A DNA stretch of 64,000 bases, from positions 248,001 through 312,000 of the IMG/VR virus record IMGVR_UViG_3300025121_000011. One strand, given 5' to 3'. The notes beneath the pieces are model-generated. The model saw only the letters and a program-made list of their open reading frames with translations, was not told the DNA's origin and did not search any database. Of this stretch, positions 11,976 through 62,530 are shown piece by piece; the first letter of the stretch is position 1; each line of letters opens with the position of its first letter. Position numbers and translations under genes: made by a program.

Positions 11976-12272
11976 TGTGGGCAACGTGGCCTAACGGCAG
12001 GGACGCCTTTTGTTTTGACACGATGGTTGGGTCCGCTGGTTGGACCTGGAGTAACATCTATCTGGTTGAAGTTTGGTTCCTGGGTATGACCGTAGTGTAT
12101 GGTAGCCGCTGGTATGCAGAGGCATAGACCAGAATAGAAGCGGGGTTATATCGTTTAATCCGTCGTGCTTTGGCATAGAACATGCATTAAGCAAAGACTG
12201 TGCCAAGTCGAACACCGGCGACAATAAGTTAACTCTAAAAAGATATCTTCCGAAGTAATAAAAAGATAAGAG

Positions 12273-17791: not shown

Positions 17792-17829
17792 TAAGGAATA
17801 CTGAGGGATTGGACATCATTGGAGCGAGA

Positions 17830-18330
17830 TGTCATGATGGTTCGCTCTACCCATGCCCCTTAAGTGGGTGTTACCAACAAGGAGTTAGGAATGTATAAGA
17901 ATAAGAATAAGAATAACTCTGGACGGGATTTATCCTGTTCACCAGCAGGATAAGCTGCTGGGAGCAAAGTAGGCCGTGAGAGCTTTGGATACCTTCTGTC
18001 TGACAGCAGAGGGCAAACGAAAAAGCAAGCCGAAAAGCTTGGTGTGAGGGATGCGAAGACAGAGACCTGTCAGGTCTGGTCGTTCACCTAAAACCCTCCC
18101 TTGGTCCGCCGTGTGTGCAGATTAACTTAAGAATGCGTGTCCGGATACGCAAACTGAGACACTGATGCGCACATAGGGTAAGCGGGCCTATTTTAGTAAC
18201 TAAAACGGAGAAAGTTAAAACAAAAAAGGAAATAAGCGATTCTGCCCTGGGTCTGATACAGTGGGGTTCGTCACTTAGAAGGTTCATAACCTCTTGGACG
18301 ACAACGACTGCCAGACCCAGGGCGTTTCAT
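17830..18330 (+). ncRNA. candidate structured ncRNA
   Basis: About 500 nt without a credible + strand ORF; perfect 12-bp long-range stem 18244-18255/18312-18323 and multiple hairpins. Confidence 0.45.
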
Positions 18331-18477
18331 TGTTTAAAGATTACTTGGCATGAGACTTGCATTAAGCAAATGTCATGCCAACGCACGTATAAGCATTTTA
18401 TACTCTGGCGGCAAAAGAATAACATCATCTTTAAAAATATATTCTTTGTAGTAACTAACATCTGAAAGGAGGCTGAG

Positions 18478-19350
18478 ATGGCAATGATTTCCAAAGATGA
18501 AATGCTTGCGCGAGTAGTTGACCCTATTCTTGAGGCAATGAAAGAGGGAAAGCTGCTATGGCTTCAAGGATGGAATGTGGGTGCGGGTGCGGGTCTCCCT
18601 TATAACCCGACCAAAGCATCTAATAAGCAAGCGTATCGAGGTGCGGTCAATAACATCTTGATGTGGTTTGCGTCCGCTGCTAATGGTTGGGGCGACCCTC
18701 GTTGGATGGGTTTTGCTCAAGCGAAAACAAAAGGATGGCGAGTTCGGAAGGGGGAGGAGTCGACCCAAATCTATGCTCCAATCATGGGTTCGTATCCGAT
18801 TGAAGAGAACGGCCAAAAGGTTTGGAGAAAATATGTCAAGGGCTTCAACCCTGTTCATGTTTTCAATGCCCAACAGGTGGATGGAATCCCCGCGATTGAA
18901 AAGGCTGGAACCTTGGATGTCTCCACCGGATATGCTGCCGCAGAGGACATGTATAAGGCTATGAACGTGCAAACGATTCATGGCGGTAATGTGGCTGCAT
19001 ATGCATATCAGGTTGACATCATTAGGATGCCGGAACCAGAAATGTTTGTGGGCGCAGATGAATACCACGCTACGCGCTTGCATGAAATGGGGCATGCGAC
19101 GGGGCACCCGTCTCGCATGGATAGAAGGATGTTCGGAACAGGGTTACAGGATTACGCTCAGGAAGAGCTTGTAGCGGAGTTGTTTGCTGCTTTCGCATGT
19201 GCAGACATTGGCGTATCCAAAGCTGAAATGACGCAGAATCATGCAGCATACCTCAAAAGCTGGCATGAGCGTCTAAGCAGGGAACCAAAAGCATTCATAG
19301 ATGCCGTATCGGCAGCATGGGAAGCTTTTGAGTTTGTTCGAAAACTGTGA
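18478..19350 (+). CDS. ardC: ArdC-family antirestriction/ssDNA-binding protein with zincin-like domain
   Basis: LPYNP..YRG..N..WMGFAQAK..GWRVRKGE; YHATRLHEMGHATGHPSRMDR; YAQEELVAE. Confidence 0.9.
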   Translation: MAMISKDEMLARVVDPILEAMKEGKLLWLQGWNVGAGAGLPYNPTKASNKQAYRGAVNNILMWFASAANGWGDPRWMGFAQAKTKGWRVRKGEESTQIYAPIMGSYPIEENGQKVWRKYVKGFNPVHVFNAQQVDGIPAIEKAGTLDVSTGYAAAEDMYKAMNVQTIHGGNVAAYAYQVDIIRMPEPEMFVGADEYHATRLHEMGHATGHPSRMDRRMFGTGLQDYAQEELVAELFAAFACADIGVSKAEMTQNHAAYLKSWHERLSREPKAFIDAVSAAWEAFEFVRKL

Positions 19351-27316: not shown

Positions 27317-27555
27317 GCATGCAAGTACAAGTAGCTCTACCCAAAACAGAGGAAGAGATTCTCGCCTATCTTCAGGGATTGCAACCTGGAGAGAGAGTGA
27401 GAGAAACTGGTAATTCTATGACAAATCAAGAAGGCGATGTCTCCATCAATGGACGTGGAAGCGTCTGTGTACTTTGGGATCCATTTGAAGATGGGAACCG
27501 GATGGGGACATCTATAACTTATGGCACACGAAGAGTGTCTGATCTAGAGGAATAG
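27274..27555 (+). CDS. hypothetical protein (likely start about 27313)
   Basis: Coupled to the previous stop. Confidence 0.55.
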   Translation: MVSAKESCCFRRDMSMQVQVALPKTEEEILAYLQGLQPGERVRETGNSMTNQEGDVSINGRGSVCVLWDPFEDGNRMGTSITYGTRRVSDLEE

Positions 27556-27644
27556 TATGTGATCGCAATAAATTAGAGTTAAAATGTTCGCAGGCGGCAA
27601 AAACTTAACTGCATCTCTAAAAAAATATTCTACATAGTAATATA

Positions 27645-28590
27645 GGGCTGTGAGAGGAGCTAACTTGAAGGGCTAAAGAGTTTGTGGTGATGATAGTGTT
27701 AGTTGAGTTAACTTCTTTCACAGGACCTGGAGACTTCTCGGAAATATTTAAGATGGTATCATAACCGACTGGCAGGGAGCCGCACGGCAACAAAGGGCGT
27801 TCACCTTAGGGTGGGGGTCTGCCAAAATGATCAAGCCAAGCCTTGCAGGTAGGAGTGACCGGCGAAACTCCCGTAACCTGAGTAGGAGAATGGCAAGACG
27901 TGAGGGACATGCAGTCGACCCTTAGGGATACGATAATCCCCATTTTTTAACATCGTTACAAATAAGTGTTTATTGAGTTTCACCAGTATCTCGGATAAAG
28001 GCGATGTTAAAGTTAAAACTGGTACTTGTTCTTAGCGGATCCCCGGCTCCGCGTTTGCCCAGAGGAAAGCCGAGAGACGTATAGTTTCTAACGGGTAGGC
28101 AGCATCGCAAGAGTGCCTGATAAAAAGAGGTTATCGGTGGTTGGCTTAGAGGCAGCCATCCTTAATGAGTGAGACGATTGCCCCAAGGCGCAAAATGTCG
28201 GTAAGTGGTAACAGCTATGCCGATGATGTACCGGGGATAAACAGGGAAAGTGAAAGGCACCCCGTAACTGGTAAGGCCAATCTTCTCTTCAGCGTAATAG
28301 CACGCCGATATAATCTCTTTTAGGTAGGTCCACATGGAATAGCCAAGCGCTATGGGATCGAATATTATCGCATTTGGGAATGGTACTCTCCCGCTGGTTG
28401 TACCACCTTCTTAAGCGTCAGACATTTACAATGCATAATGCCGGTTAATTTTGCCGGTTAAAGTTGTGAATGTAGAAAACACTTGTATATATAAGAACAC
28501 AAGCAGTGACGTAAGTCTGTGATGATTCTATGCAGACACTCTATCATAAATTATAAAAGATGCGCAGCTTTAAAGCTGCGCATCTTCATT
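27645..28590 (+). ncRNA. large structured ncRNA containing a 23S rRNA GTPase-associated-centre-like domain
   Basis: About 940-nt ORF-free unit between a header (27594) and a terminator (about 28556-28586). Contains GGTTGGCTTAGAGGCAGCCATC (H43-like) and AGCGTAATAGC (H44 loop-like), closed by stem 28132-28139/28303-28310. Confidence 0.65.
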
Positions 28591-28733
28591 TATGTGTTGG
28601 CACAGGAAATGCATTATGCAAAAATCATGCCAGTTAATTATTGTGCAAAAATCAACGTCTCCGGCGGCAAAAACTTAACTTCTCTTCTAAAAAAATATTC
28701 TATAGAGTAACATAGGGCTGTAGGAGAAACCAA

Positions 28734-28979
28734 ATGCCTTCCATCGATTATTCGGTATATATGAGGACCAGGTTACTGGACAAGGTAACCATGGCACAGC
28801 TGATAAAGGTTTGTAAAGATCGACAAGATCTGACCGTTACTCAGGAAGGTGACGATATCTTTCGTGTCTATCTTGATGTTCCAGGAAATCTGAACGCTGT
28901 TAGGATTTTGGAAGCGATTCATCGCGCAGATCGTTGGTGGGATGTAGCTTATGATCTTCGTTTCATGAAAAGCCTATAA
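28734..28979 (+). CDS. hypothetical cassette protein
   Basis: Dyad, header and AGGAG RBS. Confidence 0.65.
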   Translation: MPSIDYSVYMRTRLLDKVTMAQLIKVCKDRQDLTVTQEGDDIFRVYLDVPGNLNAVRILEAIHRADRWWDVAYDLRFMKSL

Positions 28980-30223: not shown

Positions 30224-30308
30224 GGGGGCGTGGCGGAAAGGCAGACGCGTCAGACTTAAAATCTGGTGAGCTTAGCTCGTGTGGGTTCAAGTCCCACCGC
30301 CCCTACCA
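30224..30308 (+). tRNA. trnL: tRNA-Leu(TAA)
   Basis: Full cloverleaf with variable arm, anticodon loop CT-TAA-AA, GGTTCAAGTCC T-arm and encoded CCA. Confidence 0.95.
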
Positions 30309-31342: not shown

Positions 31343-32033
31343 AAGCCATCGGTAGCCATGGAGGAGTTTGTTGGGTCAACCAATAGATGTCGATTCCGAA
31401 TCTGATGCAAGGCTCGTGTCCCGGATTTGCTTGCGGGAAAAGAGGTGGTGAATTGACCGTCTATGCGTTATTACGTGTGGCCCGTCAAACATTGGACCTC
31501 ATAGTTTGAGTGACGAACCTATTCTCAAACACACTTTACACCAGAAGAGAGTCATGCCTGGACGCAGGAAGATATACAGAACATAAAAGAATGGGCGCAA
31601 TTCTCATCCTTCTGGTGTCTTTTATTTTATAATTTAGTCTTCACTTAAGAGTATCATGCTTTTGTCCTTCTTGTTGATGCGCTGATGCCTGTATTAACTC
31701 TGATACTAGACTAATCTGTAGTTACTTATATCAATGTTAAGGCGGCAAAACTTTTGCACATGCAGGCACGAAAGCTGCTATATGCAAGAATCATGCCAAG
31801 GGTTGAGAGTATTGACGCGACAAGAATTCCTGGCGGCAAAAGCTTTACAGCAACTTTAAAAAAATATCCCCCGTAGTAACTAAGAGGTGCAGGGGCAAGG
31901 TTCCAGACTCCAGCCCGGTAGCCCCTGCCGACCGGGCGGCCAAAACGGCCTTCTAACTCTAAAAAAATATTCTATAGAGTAATATAAGGCCAGCCGCCTG
32001 AGCGGCAAATAACAACAAACAGAGAGGTGTGAG

Positions 32034-33157: not shown

Positions 33158-33233
33158 GGGACGTTAACTCAATTGGTAGAGTAGCGGACTTTTAATCCGT
33201 TTGTTTGGGGTTCGAGTCCCCAACGTCCCACCA
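33158..33233 (+). tRNA. trnK: tRNA-Lys(TTT)
   Basis: 76-nt cloverleaf, anticodon loop CT-TTT-AA, encoded CCA. Confidence 0.95.
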
Positions 33234-33342: not shown

Positions 33343-33413
33343 CCGGTGGTAGCTCAGCAAGGTTAGAGCGCTCAGACAACTGAGAAAACGCGGGTTCAAT
33401 TCCCGCCCCCGTA
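33343..33413 (+). ncRNA. tRNA-like element or pseudo-tRNA
   Basis: Canonical D-arm and T-arm, but the anticodon arm has a 4-nt loop, the acceptor stem is imperfect and there is no CCA. Confidence 0.5.
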
Positions 33414-36834: not shown

Positions 36835-37672
36835 TTGATTCTTTGGCGGAAAATTTTAACGCAATATCCGGCATGATTCTTGCTTGATGCAATATCCATG
36901 CCGACCATACAAATCCCAGGCGGCAAAACCTTTACACCAGCTACAGTCGACACTGGGTACAAAAACTTTGCAGCACAAACAATCCATGGCGGCAAAAGTT
37001 TGTCATGCGCATTATTCAACTGGATACAAAAACTTTGCACAAGATATAACCAACTCTTATACATCATCATCTTATAAAAAAAATCATGAAGCTAATACAA
37101 GGCTGTAAATAGAACGGATTGGTTAGCAATCCATTGGATTGCCTTGATTAATACTAAGGGAGAGTTTCAGTTATGACATCAATAATCTTTGGCATCATTG
37201 CTGCAATGCTTTTTCTGGTATTATTCGTTCTTCTGCTTTATGAGCTTGATACTTTTTATCGAGGACTGCTCGCAGAGTTTGTGGAGTGGATGGCACAACG
37301 ACCAAAACGACCAAAGAAATAACAAAGAAAGAATTAAAAAAGAATGGAGTTGATCTTAACTCTCAGCTTTCTTTATTTGCTGTGGTATTTATTTATTTTT
37401 AGAGGAGAATAACATGATGGAATTTTTTCTTATTCTTTTTTTGTGGTTTGGATTCGTCTCTATTCTATACTTGCTTTCTGTTATCAGAGGAAATAGAGGA
37501 GACGAAGACTGATTACCCATTTGATACCCGTTTGGTCGTAATCCTTTTTGAATAGGGAGCGTAAATGTTCTGGAAACTTTTGCCGTTGATTATGGTTATC
37601 ATTTTAACTGCACCTTACTTTTATAACTCGTACAAAGAATCTCTCATTAGAAAGAAGATTCCTGGGAATAAA

Positions 37673-37748
37673 GACTTTTCTGAGGATGGGACTTTTTCTG
37701 AGTAATCGACTTTTTCTGAGAATGAAAAGTTTTTAAAGGGGGGGGGGT
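37673..37748. repeat. three GACTTTT(T)CTGAG direct repeats followed by an 11-G run
   Basis: Copies at 37673, 37690 and 37708 (17-18 bp period); G run at 37738-37748. Confidence 0.75.
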
Positions 37749-38204
37749 GCAGTTTTAAAAGTTAAAAGTAACTGAGTAACGGTTGAAAACTGACCCAGGT
37801 ACCTTTCTAACTTTATAAAAATATTTACTCCTTTTTATTAAAGCATCGCTGCAAATGCATACCTAAATGCATACCTAAAAAATATAATCTGGAAATATTT
37901 AAAGAAATATCATACAACCTATTCACAGACATGAACATGCGTTTTCTTTCTACTGACACTCGCTTCAAACACTCTCCTAAAGAAAGTGAAAGAGTATTTA
38001 TTACTGAGAGTGAGGATTTGCAGAATAAGCCGTAGAATCATTGTGATACTGTTATTAACAAAAAAGATGATCAACGTGTGCGAACATATCACACAGAGTT
38101 TCCAGAGTTTCATTAAGGTCCGTATACAGATACGCATATCCGAAAATATATTCTGGAAATTTTTTTTCCAGATATTTATATAAGACATTCATACGGAAAT
38201 ACTC

Positions 38205-49194: not shown

Positions 49195-50160
49195 ATGAAG
49201 CTTGAAGAAATTGGTTTTTATAGTTTGCACGATGAGCGAGCCAAAAATACTTCGTCCTCTTCTCCTATGCAACGATGCGAAGTTTTAATTACGGAGGATT
49301 GCAATTTTAGTTGTCCTTATTGCAAGATGAAGAAGAATAGTTCTTATCTTTCTTTTGAAGATGCAAAAACCCTTATTGATTATTGGGCAGATGATGGATT
49401 AGTTAATATTCGATTCTCCGGAGGAGAGCCGACTATGAATCCGTATCTTTATCAGATGGTAGAATATGCTAAGAGTCGCGAGATTAAACGGATAGCTATT
49501 TCTACCAATGGCTCCATGGTAACCGAGGTTTATCACGATCTGGTTCAAGCGGGAGTAAATGACTTCTCTATTTCACTTGATGCTTGTTGTGCATCTGATG
49601 GAGATATTATGGCAGGTGGTGTTGAGGGCTCTTTTAATAGGGTGATTGAAAATATCAAATATTTGTCAGCAAGAACATATGTTACGGTAGGAGTTGTTAT
49701 TACTCATGAGAATGTTTCTAATGTGGCGAATATTGTTCGTTTTGCTCATGAACTTGGAGTTGCGGATATTCGCTTGATTTCTGCTGCACAATATAATGTT
49801 CTTTTAAAAGGAGTAGAGGATATCGATCCACAGATACTTGAGGCTCACCCGATTCTTAAGTATCGAGTTAATAATATTTTAGCCGGCCATAATGTGCGCG
49901 GTATGAAAGATTGTGATTCTCATACTTGTTATTTAATTCAGGACGATTCTGTGGTAGTTAATGGGAAGCATTATCCTTGTGTTATTCATATGAGGGAAAG
50001 TGGTAAACCAATTGGAAAGATTGGACCAAATATGCGACAGGAAAGAATTGCTTGGATGAAAAATCATGATCCTCATGATGACCCGATATGCAGATCGAAT
50101 TGCTTGGATATTTGTATTCTATACTCTAATAAGGTAAGATCATTTCACAAGGACATTTAA
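49195..50160 (+). CDS. radical SAM protein
   Basis: CNFSCPYC cluster motif, FSGGEPT, ISTNG, SISLD. Confidence 0.9.
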   Translation: MKLEEIGFYSLHDERAKNTSSSSPMQRCEVLITEDCNFSCPYCKMKKNSSYLSFEDAKTLIDYWADDGLVNIRFSGGEPTMNPYLYQMVEYAKSREIKRIAISTNGSMVTEVYHDLVQAGVNDFSISLDACCASDGDIMAGGVEGSFNRVIENIKYLSARTYVTVGVVITHENVSNVANIVRFAHELGVADIRLISAAQYNVLLKGVEDIDPQILEAHPILKYRVNNILAGHNVRGMKDCDSHTCYLIQDDSVVVNGKHYPCVIHMRESGKPIGKIGPNMRQERIAWMKNHDPHDDPICRSNCLDICILYSNKVRSFHKDI

Positions 50161-50197
50161 ACTAGTTAAACATAAAAACTAAAAATATGAGGTAATA

Positions 50198-51286
50198 ATG
50201 CGATTTATTCATTTTCCAAAAATTGGTCAATTCAAGGATGCTATTCATTCGATTCGTCAACGAGGCGCTTATGTAGGTAGAGATGTTAATGGCGATATTA
50301 TTTATGATAGTTCTATTTTGATGCCAAAAATTACATTCATTGGTTCTGTTAAAATGCATGGTACTAATTCTGCTGTATCTTTTCATCGTATGGAAGGAGT
50401 GAGGCAGGCTCAATCTAGGAATAAGATTTTATCTATAGAATCAGATAACAATGGATTTTGTAGATTTACAGAGTCTATTCCCGAAGATGTTTGGGATTTT
50501 CTTTTTAATTCTCTATTATCTCCACTAATTACTGAGCCATATCTTTTTGGACGAGTAACGGTTTTTGGAGAATGGATTGGTCCCGGTGTTCAGGGTGGTG
50601 AAATTGGTATTAAATATCTTCCGAATAAAATCTTTGTAGTGTTCGGAGTATATGTTGGGGAGCGTGATGAATTAGAAGATAAAACTCCCACCGGATACTT
50701 TGTTCCTCTTTGTGATATTCCATCTTTCAATGATGAATCTTATCATCTGAATGATAATAGAATTTATTTAATTACTGATTTAGCTCCAACTTTCAAAATA
50801 GAAGTCGATTGTAATTATCCAGAAATTTCTAGGAATAAGTTGGTCGAATTAACTATGCAAGTTGAAGCTAAGTGCCCAGTCGCCAATTACTTTGGAATTG
50901 AAGGAACGGGAGAGGGCATCGTATGGTGCTCAATTACGGAAGGGTGGATGGGTCCAGATTTTTGGTTTAAGACCAAGGGAGAAAAGCATTCCGCTTCAAA
51001 GATAAAAAAGATAGCCGAAGTAGATGTAACAAAGGTAGAGGGAGTAATTGCGTTTTTAGAAGAGACTCTAACTGAAGTTAGATTGAATCAAGCTTTGGAA
51101 TACTTAAAAGAAAAAGAGATGCCTATCGATCGAAGTAGCACAGGCGAGTTTGTTCGGTGGATGATCAATGACGTTACTACTGAAGAGGCTATAATGATGG
51201 AAGCCTCAGGACTTACAGTAAAAGAAGTTGGTCCCAAATTAGGCACAGCCGCCAGGCAGTGGTTTTTTAATCAACTTAATAAGTAG
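50198..51286 (+). CDS. RNA ligase, Rnl2-like family
   Basis: VKMHGTN motif I, FGEWIG, FVVFGV, GEGIVW, FKTKGEKH. Confidence 0.85.
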   Translation: MRFIHFPKIGQFKDAIHSIRQRGAYVGRDVNGDIIYDSSILMPKITFIGSVKMHGTNSAVSFHRMEGVRQAQSRNKILSIESDNNGFCRFTESIPEDVWDFLFNSLLSPLITEPYLFGRVTVFGEWIGPGVQGGEIGIKYLPNKIFVVFGVYVGERDELEDKTPTGYFVPLCDIPSFNDESYHLNDNRIYLITDLAPTFKIEVDCNYPEISRNKLVELTMQVEAKCPVANYFGIEGTGEGIVWCSITEGWMGPDFWFKTKGEKHSASKIKKIAEVDVTKVEGVIAFLEETLTEVRLNQALEYLKEKEMPIDRSSTGEFVRWMINDVTTEEAIMMEASGLTVKEVGPKLGTAARQWFFNQLNK

Positions 51287-61354: not shown

Positions 61355-62530
61355 ATGACTACATCACTTGAAGATCTTACCACTGCATTACCAACTTTAT
61401 ATGCTTTAGACAGCAGCGGACGTATCAAGGTCTGGTCCGTTAGCATATGCATACATTTGGATCAATCCGCTACATATACAGTAATTCACGGGCTTTTAGA
61501 TGGAAAGAAACAGAGAAGCCCGCGCAAAATTACCAGCGGGAAAAATATTGGGAAAGCTAATGAAACTTCCCCATATGCTCAAGCGTTATCAGAAGCTCAA
61601 AGCAAATGGAAAAAACAGATTGACAAGGGATATGTAGAAGATGTGAATAACATTCCTGTCTGCACAGAGGTAGAATATTTTCTTCCGATGCTTGCTCAAA
61701 AATATACTGAGCGTAGTAAGCACATGAAATATCCTGCGTATGTGCAGCCAAAGTTCGATGGTTATCGAGCACTTAGTCGAAGAATCGGTAAGCAAGTTGT
61801 TCTATGGTCTAGAACCGGGAAGCCATTTTTTACCCTGGATATTATCGTTTCTGAATTAGAATCGATAATAAGTTCAAATGAATGTTTAGATGGGGAAGTT
61901 TATAGGCATGACTGGAGAAGTCCATCTAATGAGCCCGACTTTCAAAGAGTTTCTTCGGCAATTAAAAAGAGAAAGGCAGATACAGATTTGTTAGAATATC
62001 ATGTTTATGATCGTCCAATTCCAGAGAAGCCTGAAGCCTCATTCTATGAGCGGTTTTATAAACCAGCGTTCATTGACGGCACTTTAGTTGGCAGTGACCA
62101 TGTTAAAATTGTCCCCACTGCATTGGTGGCATCAGAAGAAGAAATGATGCTTCTTTTTAATCAATGGGTCAGTGAAGACCTTCCGTATGAAGGTGCTATC
62201 GTTAGAAATGCTTCTGGTGTATATGGATTTGACACCAGAAGCAATGATCTTCTGAAGGTAAAGGATTTTCAAGAAGAAGAGTATGAAATCATTGGAGCTA
62301 AAGAAGGTACCGGAAAAGACGAGGGTACTGCAATCTTCTTATGTAAGATGAAGGATGGTACAGAATTTGATAGTCGTCCGGTAGGCTCTTATGAGCAGAG
62401 AGCAGAATATTTAACTAACATTAGTAAATATATAGGCAGATATCTTCGGGTAAGATTTAATGGTCTGTCTAATCTTGGGGTTCCACGCTTTAATCGTGGC
62501 GTAGGTATCAGAGAAGAATGGGATATGTAA
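61355..62530 (+). CDS. lig: ATP-dependent DNA ligase
   Basis: LPMLA, VQPKFDGYR, LDGEVY, YHVYD, YEGAIVR, LLKVKD, OB-fold ending PRF. Confidence 0.9.
   Translation: MTTSLEDLTTALPTLYALDSSGRIKVWSVSICIHLDQSATYTVIHGLLDGKKQRSPRKITSGKNIGKANETSPYAQALSEAQSKWKKQIDKGYVEDVNNIPVCTEVEYFLPMLAQKYTERSKHMKYPAYVQPKFDGYRALSRRIGKQVVLWSRTGKPFFTLDIIVSELESIISSNECLDGEVYRHDWRSPSNEPDFQRVSSAIKKRKADTDLLEYHVYDRPIPEKPEASFYERFYKPAFIDGTLVGSDHVKIVPTALVASEEEMMLLFNQWVSEDLPYEGAIVRNASGVYGFDTRSNDLLKVKDFQEEEYEIIGAKEGTGKDEGTAIFLCKMKDGTEFDSRPVGSYEQRAEYLTNISKYIGRYLRVRFNGLSNLGVPRFNRGVGIREEWDM

Follow-up and report, generated by a model that had tools for sequence, protein, structure and literature searches.

What kind of RNA is encoded by a stretch of a large phage genome that is free of open reading frames (ORFs) and in which two short segments read like 23S ribosomal RNA (rRNA)? 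The question was raised by a region of 64,000 nucleotides (nt), called the window here, which covers positions 248,001 to 312,000 of the virus record IMGVR_UViG_3300025121_000011 (335 kb). A first-pass annotation of the window, made from the letters alone, had proposed that positions 27645–28590 specify a noncoding RNA of about 940 nt holding a split mimic of the GTPase-associated centre (GAC) of 23S rRNA, the site formed by helices H43 and H44 with the A1067 and A1095 loops. Transfer RNAs (tRNAs), transfer-messenger RNA (tmRNA), translation factors and a small number of ribosomal proteins have been described in viruses; the literature searched contained no account of a virus with its own copy of a functional site of rRNA. 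We find that the conserved unit is a module of approximately 190 nt, at 28126–28318, and not the 940-nt region. This module belongs to a large family of structured RNAs that phages encode; we call them split-GAC RNAs.

Similarity to the GTPase-Associated Centre of 23S rRNA

The locus was compared with the 23S rRNA of Escherichia coli MG1655 (L120, 2,904 nt), and 500 shuffles were made for each match. The 23S record of strain A12 was set aside, being 2,852 nt long with small deletions in the compared stretch, which are probably assembly errors. The two strings from which the mimic had been recognised, at 28139–28171 and 28291–28301, are present at these positions and read as they had been quoted. 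The segment 28140–28163 was identical to E. coli 1059–1082 at 22 of 24 positions (score of 38, compared to 17.5 ± 2.0 for the shuffles, none of which scored as high), and the segment 28291–28301 was identical to E. coli 1090–1100 at all 11 positions, again with none of the 500 shuffles as high. The likeness to 23S rRNA is thus above chance. Both loops of the GAC are present, UUAGAAGC with A1067 at 28146–28153 and GUAAUA with A1095 at 28294–28299. The equivalents of U1090 and G1091 correspond to 28170 and 28292, and the 121 nt between them agree with the insertion of about 120 nt that had been described.

Other parts of the first-pass annotation needed correction. The closing helix is real, but its register in the family is 6 bp and not 8 bp; the claimed pairs 28138/28304 and 28139/28303 belong instead to the base of H43 and to G1087-C1102. 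Inside the insert, the segment 28219–28242 matched 23S positions 1122–1145 at 20 of 24 positions (none of 500 shuffles as good for the 24-mer). This match is beyond chance, but it was seen only in the window and in one other locus (L004) and is not a trait of the family. The similarity of 28243–28263 to 23S positions 466–487, given earlier as about 468–488, exists as an alignment but is weak, since 11 of the 500 shuffles were as good. Taken as a whole, the insert scored only about 2.5 standard units (z) above shuffles against the rRNA operon, and the rRNA similarity of the arm consensus and of both flanks was at chance level. There is thus no support for an assembly of the RNA from rRNA-like modules: the only rRNA likeness shared by the family is the GAC, as the arm consensus shows no rRNA match and the 1122–1145 likeness is restricted to the window and L004. 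The module lies outside any rRNA gene, and the Rfam search of the window returned no large-subunit (LSU) rRNA.

Architecture of the Split-GAC Module

The coordinates of the module and of the features around it are given in Table 1. The family shows a constant order of elements: a closing stem of free sequence, H43 with its UUAGAAGC loop, the strand YUAARGAGU, an arm-opening helix, the linker UUU(G/A), the segment GCGUAAUAGCAC and the return strand of the closing stem. The window follows this layout, which in the family covariance model (named R1) reads P1, H43, YUAARGAGU, P-ins arm, UUU(G/A), GCGUAAUAGCAC and P1', with a variant linker. The linker is UUCA in the window (28288–28291) in place of UUUG, UUU(G/A) being found in 97–99% of the members. 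A further stem of 6–8 bp, P0, extends the closing helix, and the module is here borne on a 14-bp stem. Within the H44 portion, A28302 pairs with U28170 and C28303 with G28167.

The inserted arm opens with the helix P-ins, formed by 28171–28179 and 28279–28287, in which the four modelled pairs all covary. The inner helix of the arm is made of CCCC (28181–28184) and GGGG (28233–28236). Further out, the window holds the exact 17-mer CCCCGTAACTGGTAAGG of the distal arm at 28260–28276. The distal-arm helix covaries, and the G.U pair of its hairpin is replaced by G-C and U-A among members. This distal arm, with CACCCCGUAACUGGUAAGG, is present in about half of the members including the window, and 39 of the 77 unique members hold a degenerate form of the motif. 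Across the family the arm measures approximately 60–280 nt, and the insertion point, between 1090 and 1091, is the same in all members. Removal of the insert would join GAGU directly to GCGUAAUAGC, which we take to be the bacterial H44 consensus, and the arm therefore appears as a clean insertion in the 5' strand of H44.

The insert edges, 28170/28171 and 28291/28292, happen to fit the group I intron rule, the upstream base being U (96% of the family). The last base of the insert is G in 84% of the members and A in the window, and the compact inserts, at about 65 nt, leave no room for a group I core.

Table 1. Features of the split-GAC locus in the window (all coordinates are window positions).
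Feature	Position	Strand	Evidence
Phage promoter-like motif, GGCGGCAAAAACTTAACT ... CTAAAAAAATATTCT ... AGTAAT	27593–27643	+	Directly upstream of the ORF-free unit; 16 copies versus 0.07 expected
ORF-free unit holding the module (extent as a single RNA inferred)	27645–28590	+	ORF gap, folding energy
Internal terminator-like hairpin, 5 bp, 6-nt loop, then U6	27925–27947	+	Terminator scan
P0 outer stem, 5' strand, pairs with 28315–28321	28122–28129	+	Sequence; kept in the minimum-free-energy fold
Split-GAC module	28126–28318	+	R1 covariance model: 118.9 bits, E 1.8e-28, full-length, sole match in 64 kb
P1, 5' strand (top of H42), pairs with 28305–28310	28132–28137	+	6/6 P1 pairs covary across the family
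H43-like hairpin (23S 1058–1080), A1067 equivalent at 28148	28139–28161	+	22/24 identity; pairs 1058-1080 and 1064-1074 covary
Junction strand UUAAUGAGU (23S 1081/2–1090), 1 base shorter than in E. coli	28162–28170	+	Family conservation
121-nt inserted arm: P-ins, inner helix, distal arm, linker	28171–28291	+	Covariation; subfamily alignment A3
Conserved distal arm: helix GGC/GCC, internal loop ACC/UAA, hairpin CCG-UAAC-UGG	28256–28278	+	17-mer, covariation
H44, 3' portion (23S 1091–1103), hexaloop GUAAUA, A1095 equivalent at 28296	28292–28304	+	11/11 identity at 1090–1100
3' strands of P1 (28305–28310) and P0 (28315–28321), internal loop UAAU between	28305–28321	+	Sequence, R1 model
13-bp GC-rich hairpin with weak U-tract (likely terminator)	28557–28586	+	Terminator scan

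Covariation and Conservation of the Fold

A structure of 27 pairs was tested on a MAFFT alignment of 20 sequences, the same alignment from which R1 was built. In this alignment 95.7% of the cells were paired, compared to 37–48% when the partners were slid, and 16 of the 27 pairs showed double changes. For 82 distinct sequences the values were 96.2% of cells and 21 of 27 pairs, figures that are flattered because this larger alignment was fitted to the R1 model. The slid controls ranged overall from 33 to 48%, and the fold is supported by covariation. RNAalifold, applied to the 20-sequence alignment, independently recovered 21 of the 27 pairs. Compensatory changes were present among the 82 sequences in every modelled helix of at least two pairs. 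P1, H43 and H44 are all present and paired, and together they make the three-way junction of the GAC fold.

The bases engaged in the tertiary contacts of the GAC (U1060, G1071, C1072, A1077, A1088, 1091–1094 and 1098–1100) were conserved at about 90–100% in the 77 unique members. The junction bases A1084, A1085, G1087, A1088, G1089 and U1090 were kept at 96–100%, and positions 1091–1094 and 1098–1101 at 97–100%. At the level of single bases in the unique members, A1067 was found at 88%, A1095 at 90%, A1069 at 96% and U1066 at 97%, whereas G1093, U1094 and A1098 reached 100%. The tertiary pair 1082-1086, which lies outside the model, also covaries, with U-A in 27, C-G in 20 and A-U in 12 members, or 59 of the 77. 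The contacts U1060-A1088, G1071/C1072 with the H44 stem, and 1082-1086 are therefore all represented, by bases conserved at 90% or more or, for 1082-1086, by covariation. Conversely, R1, which is derived from phage sequences, recognised authentic GACs, scoring 42.9 bits on E. coli 23S 1044–1117 and 48.5 bits on Paenibacillus 23S.

The covariation, the conservation of the tertiary bases and the R1 scores on true GACs lead us to conclude that the module takes up the GAC fold, or is under selection to do so, its form in three dimensions being predicted from sequence. We hold it highly probable that the family and its fold are real.

A Family of Phage RNAs

When viral contigs were scanned by exact pattern for the H43 string, the contig of the window and six others were returned. 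None of these corresponds to an annotatable rRNA gene, one of them (L002) resembling a short 23S fragment; in three the string lies within arrays of phage tRNA genes, and in one it lies within a group I intron. Two further scans added 108 loci, and the 17-mer of the distal arm was found in 50 viral loci. With R1, 100 viral loci gave 99 matches, and another 17 loci, of which 14 were viral and 3 came from cultured phages, gave 13. More than 100 viral contigs share the split-GAC architecture. Family membership is thus common beyond the window, mostly in tRNA arrays, a point that the first-pass annotation had missed. A typical member is a free-standing element of about 110–330 nt, and nothing is conserved around most members.

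Cultured phages carry the RNA as well. R1 scored 119 and 129 bits, respectively, in the Pseudomonas phages pf16 and Milchi and 103 in Aeromonas phage 4_4572, and 64, 64 and 61 bits, respectively, in Serratia phage BF, Xanthomonas phage XacN1 and Cronobacter phage GAP32. In these genomes the RNA is either unannotated or overlaid by a doubtful ORF. In Milchi (L148, 1530–1661), an annotated "hypothetical protein" of 43 amino acids (aa) lies over the RNA on the opposite strand, and this gene is probably a spurious call.

In the genomes of 185,579 prokaryotic species the 17-mer was found at 20 loci, of which only six were true members, all on draft contigs or contigs of metagenome-assembled genomes; the family is therefore enriched in viruses. 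A BLAST search with the whole unit as the query found no match among 50,697 phage records, nor did a search with a compact member; an E. coli-like member was the only query to reach cultured phages. Rfam reported no family at gathering score at the elements of 31 loci (30 viral or phage loci and the window). No description of the family was found in the open full-text literature, including a 2026 review of jumbo phages, a coverage that stops short of subscription-only literature. The family may be included in a catalogue from 2023 that lists more than 10,000 viral RNA candidates without names and does not mention a likeness to rRNA (PMC10690425). We rate the split-GAC RNA as a new kind of phage RNA, apparently undescribed.

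Locus L024 (3841–4339) holds two split-GAC RNAs in tandem, 4 nt apart. The record of Paenibacillus phage Pd_22F (L149, 397–3037) contains a near-complete bacterial 23S gene (2619 bits), which is either host DNA or an assembly artefact.

Genomic Setting of the Family

Half of the elements (47 of 94) lie at most 300 nt from a tRNA gene on the same strand. The flanking tRNAs end 1–10 nt before the P1 closing stem or start 4–29 nt after it. The elements are spaced as tRNAs are in arrays, and their ends would therefore be cut by tRNA-processing enzymes. The pf16 element is placed between tRNA-Asn and tRNA-Pro. In a 163-kb phage contig (L007, 10015–11318), the split-GAC RNA begins 4 nt past a tmRNA (89 bits), in the company of an RNase P RNA (120 bits) and more than 20 tRNAs. 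The position in a tRNA array is typical of the family and does not define it, as about half of the members are found without it.

The remaining elements are intergenic and lie between unrelated, intact genes, among them genes for capsid protein, glycosyltransferase, RlaP, CCA-adding enzyme and RNA ligase. A fixed protein partner was sought among these neighbours and none was found. The idea that the members wedged between ORFs are introns was rejected, the neighbouring genes being unrelated and intact. The only intron-borne member is that of L004 (3690–5756). There, a T7 gp4-like primase-helicase gene consists of a Toprim exon and a DnaB_C exon on either side of a group I intron (64.8 bits), and the module forms the P6 extension of the intron. 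The 18 other loci without tRNAs showed no group I core.

The Surrounding ORF-Free Unit

The first-pass annotation had described the region as free of ORFs, and this holds: 27556–28518 is the longest gap on the + strand of the window without an ORF of at least 55 aa, and the small ORFs within it are unconvincing. A promoter-like motif of about 55 nt (GGCGGCAAAAAnTTAACT ... CTAAAAATATATTCT ... AGTAA) is found in 16 copies over window positions 12217–57535, 15 of them on the + strand. Its spacing is unlike that of sigma-70 promoters. Elsewhere, the copies that were aligned stand before ORFs with Shine-Dalgarno sites, and the motif is mostly followed by small ORFs without assigned function. TGCCAA or TGCCGGTTAA-like boxes were also seen upstream of several copies of the motif, and at 28440, 28454 and 28628.

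The claim of a transcription unit of about 940 nt can be kept in part. The promoter-like motif and the 3' hairpin, likely the terminator of the unit, speak for it, whereas the unit contains an internal terminator-like site and the conserved part covers only about 190 nt. A single RNA of 940 nt is plausible and not firmer than that, because of the terminator-like hairpin and its U6 tract inside the unit. The folding energy of the whole unit was lower than expected (z = -3.4). The segments 27645–27952 (308 nt) and 27953–28125 (173 nt) gave z values of -0.6 and 0.2, and the 3' 272 nt gave -4.95, mainly from the terminator hairpin and one long hairpin. Outside 28122–28321, no homolog was found in 115 viral loci, nor any rRNA similarity or Rfam match. 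A search for diverged relatives of the phage by means of a neighbouring 284-aa protein returned only identical copies in the viral and metagenome collections, and covariation is therefore inapplicable outside the module.

The ORFs on either side are genes in their own right, each with its own stop and promoter, and the downstream one (28734–28979) has no Pfam match. None of the ten ORFs around the RNA matched Pfam, and the module is surrounded by small genes of the same promoter type without assigned function. Three other + strand stretches of the window lack an ORF of at least 55 aa: 37109–37985, 17792–18477 and 31406–32033, the last with a copy of the promoter motif at 31832 followed by a GC-rich hairpin. 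The window encodes a tRNA-Leu(UAA) at 30224–30308 and a tRNA-Lys(UUU) at 33158–33233. Beside the latter, a third tRNA-like gene at 33343–33413 (36 bits in Rfam) has a shortened anticodon arm and was not called by ARAGORN. Elsewhere in the window are an anti-restriction-like gene (18478–19350), a radical SAM gene followed by an RNA ligase gene (49195–51286) and a gene for an ATP-dependent DNA ligase (61355–62530).

A Proposed Stalk-Base Decoy

Classically, uL11 and thiopeptides bind the isolated rRNA fragment with high affinity, and ribosomes without L11 fail to activate RelA. The L11-RNA structures show that A1067 and A1095 are exposed and dispensable for the fold. Their conservation at about 90% in the family argues for a ligand over a mere scaffold. 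The most natural reading is still the binding of a stalk-base ligand. We propose a model in which the RNA would present the surface that binds uL11, thiopeptides and factors, including the A1067 and A1095 loops, and would titrate or distract a molecule that normally recognises the stalk base. The likeliest ligand would be free uL11, the capture of which could alter the composition of the stalk and the activation of RelA; such an uptake might blunt the stringent response or remodel the stalk. Alternatively, the ligand could be a weapon of the host or of a competitor directed at the GAC. The conserved arm probably holds together a tertiary fold that would otherwise be only marginally stable, or else provides a second surface for binding.

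Proteins of the stalk encoded by phages are known, namely bL12 and uL11 (PMC6375957, PMC13157829), and Tre23, as cited in PMC13768812, is a toxin modifying the GAC. The overall explanation that we favour, by a little more than an even chance, is a phage family with the GAC fold acting in trans as a stalk-base decoy. We consider it evenly balanced whether the RNA works through a natural ligand of the stalk base. That this ligand is uL11 is a tentative suggestion, and on the whole rather doubtful. The broader proposal is that phages of many lineages encode a stand-alone replica of an rRNA site which is processed like a tRNA and targets the translation apparatus, or immunity, in trans; it might equally well be right or wrong. 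Phage tRNA arrays are themselves thought to counter tRNA-directed defences.

Several points weigh against the decoy model. The module of the window lies outside a tRNA array, the nearest tRNA being 1.9 kb away (at 30224), and the internal hairpin of the unit could end an RNA of about 300 nt before the module is reached. The phage GACs do not track the GAC of the host, as pf16 has G1058-C1080 where E. coli has U-A, and positions 1070, 1096 and 1097 vary more than they presumably do in bacterial rRNA. The 121-nt arm enters H44 near the protein-binding face and might block uL11, and the intron copy of L004 points to a purely architectural or protein-recruiting role. A decoy would need to be highly abundant relative to tens of thousands of ribosomes. 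Finally, the identity of the ligand, whether uL11, a GAC-directed toxin or a factor, is a guess.

Alternative Explanations

The alternative that survives best, which we nevertheless consider rather unlikely, is a self-folding architectural module or a platform for a helper protein, without action on translation; in the window it would be the scaffold of the RNA of about 940 nt. The P6 extension of L004 belongs to a bona fide group I intron, and in the window the module caps a long stem within an ORF-free unit that is larger than itself. This explanation fits poorly with the free-standing state of most members, which are short and have nothing conserved around them, with the tRNA-like array spacing of half of them and with the conservation of the exposed A1067 and A1095. 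The rest of the unit in the window, moreover, shows neither conservation nor unusual stability.

A ligand other than uL11 or a toxin is slightly less probable again. The RNA could bind a tRNA, a translational GTPase, RelA or a phage factor, for instance by docking a tRNA elbow, as the stalk base does with A/T-state tRNA, in some form of tRNA handling. On the ribosome A1067 contacts the tRNA elbow and the cleft contacts EF-G, and the RNA resides together with tRNAs, tmRNA, RNase P RNA and the genes for CCA-adding enzyme, RlaP and RNA ligase. However, no protein neighbour is fixed, and GAC RNA in isolation, away from the remainder of the ribosome, is not known to bind tRNA or factors tightly.

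It is improbable that the module is a cis-acting leader, an rRNA-mimic operator of the downstream gene. Some members do end 4–60 nt before a start codon, and rRNA mimicry in leaders is well known (Meyer 2018, as cited in PMC10931766). The downstream genes are nevertheless unrelated and none encodes a ribosomal protein, half of the members are flanked by tRNAs, and no match to L10_leader or another leader family was found. In the window, the gene that follows has a promoter of its own and is separated from the module by a hairpin.

Inert captured host 23S DNA or a chance resemblance is very improbable: phage records can hold host rRNA, as in L149 and apparently L002, but this explanation is already contradicted by the compensatory changes across 82 distinct sequences, and members have a single insertion point and a conserved non-rRNA arm, no other rRNA parts nearby, and a 17-mer present in 50 viral loci versus six confirmed members in the prokaryotic genomes. 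A divergent GOLLD or ROOL RNA, or a relative of T4 rnaC/rnaD, would share the habitat of phage genomes near tRNAs and is as improbable, given the 31 loci without an Rfam match and a best R1 score of 8.8 bits in the tRNA cluster of T4.

Significance and Comparison with Known Systems

If the broader proposal is true, the split-GAC RNA would represent a new class of viral rRNA mimic, a counterpart to the phage tRNAs. A widespread phage RNA resembling the stalk base would add rRNA mimicry to the means of host takeover or counter-defence. As a natural variant of the GAC, with a fold that may not need uL11, it would be useful for work on RNA folding and on thiopeptides. The family also accounts for stretches without annotation in the tRNA regions of many cultured phages. 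The model is directly testable because laboratory phage-host pairs carry the RNA (Pseudomonas putida with pf16, and others).

The Rfam covariance search that had been recommended was run on the window, and the module is no plain member of a known family. At gathering score only tRNAs were reported, and with E up to 10 the region itself gave only terminator look-alikes, without a match to LSU rRNA, GOLLD, ROOL, group I intron, L10 leader or any other leader. The kinship with GOLLD or ROOL that had been suggested was thus not borne out at either threshold. GOLLD, ROOL, T4 rnaC/rnaD, phage tmRNA and RNase P RNA share with the split-GAC RNA their habitat and a presumed maturation by tRNA-processing enzymes. 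The split-GAC RNA is unrelated to them in sequence and structure, is much smaller than GOLLD or ROOL, and has a fold with an identifiable cellular model. T4 rnaC/rnaD were considered as members and rejected, since with the filters of the R1 search turned off the best match in the T4 tRNA cluster fell inside segB. The periphery of group I introns offers another parallel, the L004 module having the P6 setting in common with it; at the window, a group I intron was rejected, no RF00028 core being found in 27500–28750 at E up to 10.

As a concept, the proposed decoy resembles other mimic or decoy RNAs, such as 6S RNA, tRNA-like structures and the phage pseudo-ToxI, in which an RNA imitates a nucleic-acid ligand to capture its partner. 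The object imitated here is a functional centre of the large subunit, for which no precedent was found in the literature. A further comparison is with the leaders of ribosomal-protein genes (the L10 leader and the L1 site in the L11 operon), in which a site of 23S rRNA that binds protein is likewise mimicked by an RNA outside the ribosome; in the L10 leader the model is the H42 region, the neighbour of the region imitated by the phage RNA. These leaders are cis-acting 5' untranslated regions of cellular ribosomal-protein genes and keep few recognition features. The phage RNA, in contrast, is a near-complete copy of a tertiary domain, is found in tRNA arrays and has no ribosomal-protein gene nearby.

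The system imitated is the GAC of 23S rRNA itself (H42–H44, E. coli 1051–1108, the 58-mer that binds L11 and thiostrepton). The two have in common the topology of the junction, the loop sequences and nearly all the bases of the tertiary contacts. The phage RNA differs in being free-standing and phage-encoded, in its closing stem of free sequence, in the arm that interrupts H44, in the pairing of A1101 with U1090 and in the relaxation of positions 1070, 1096 and 1097.

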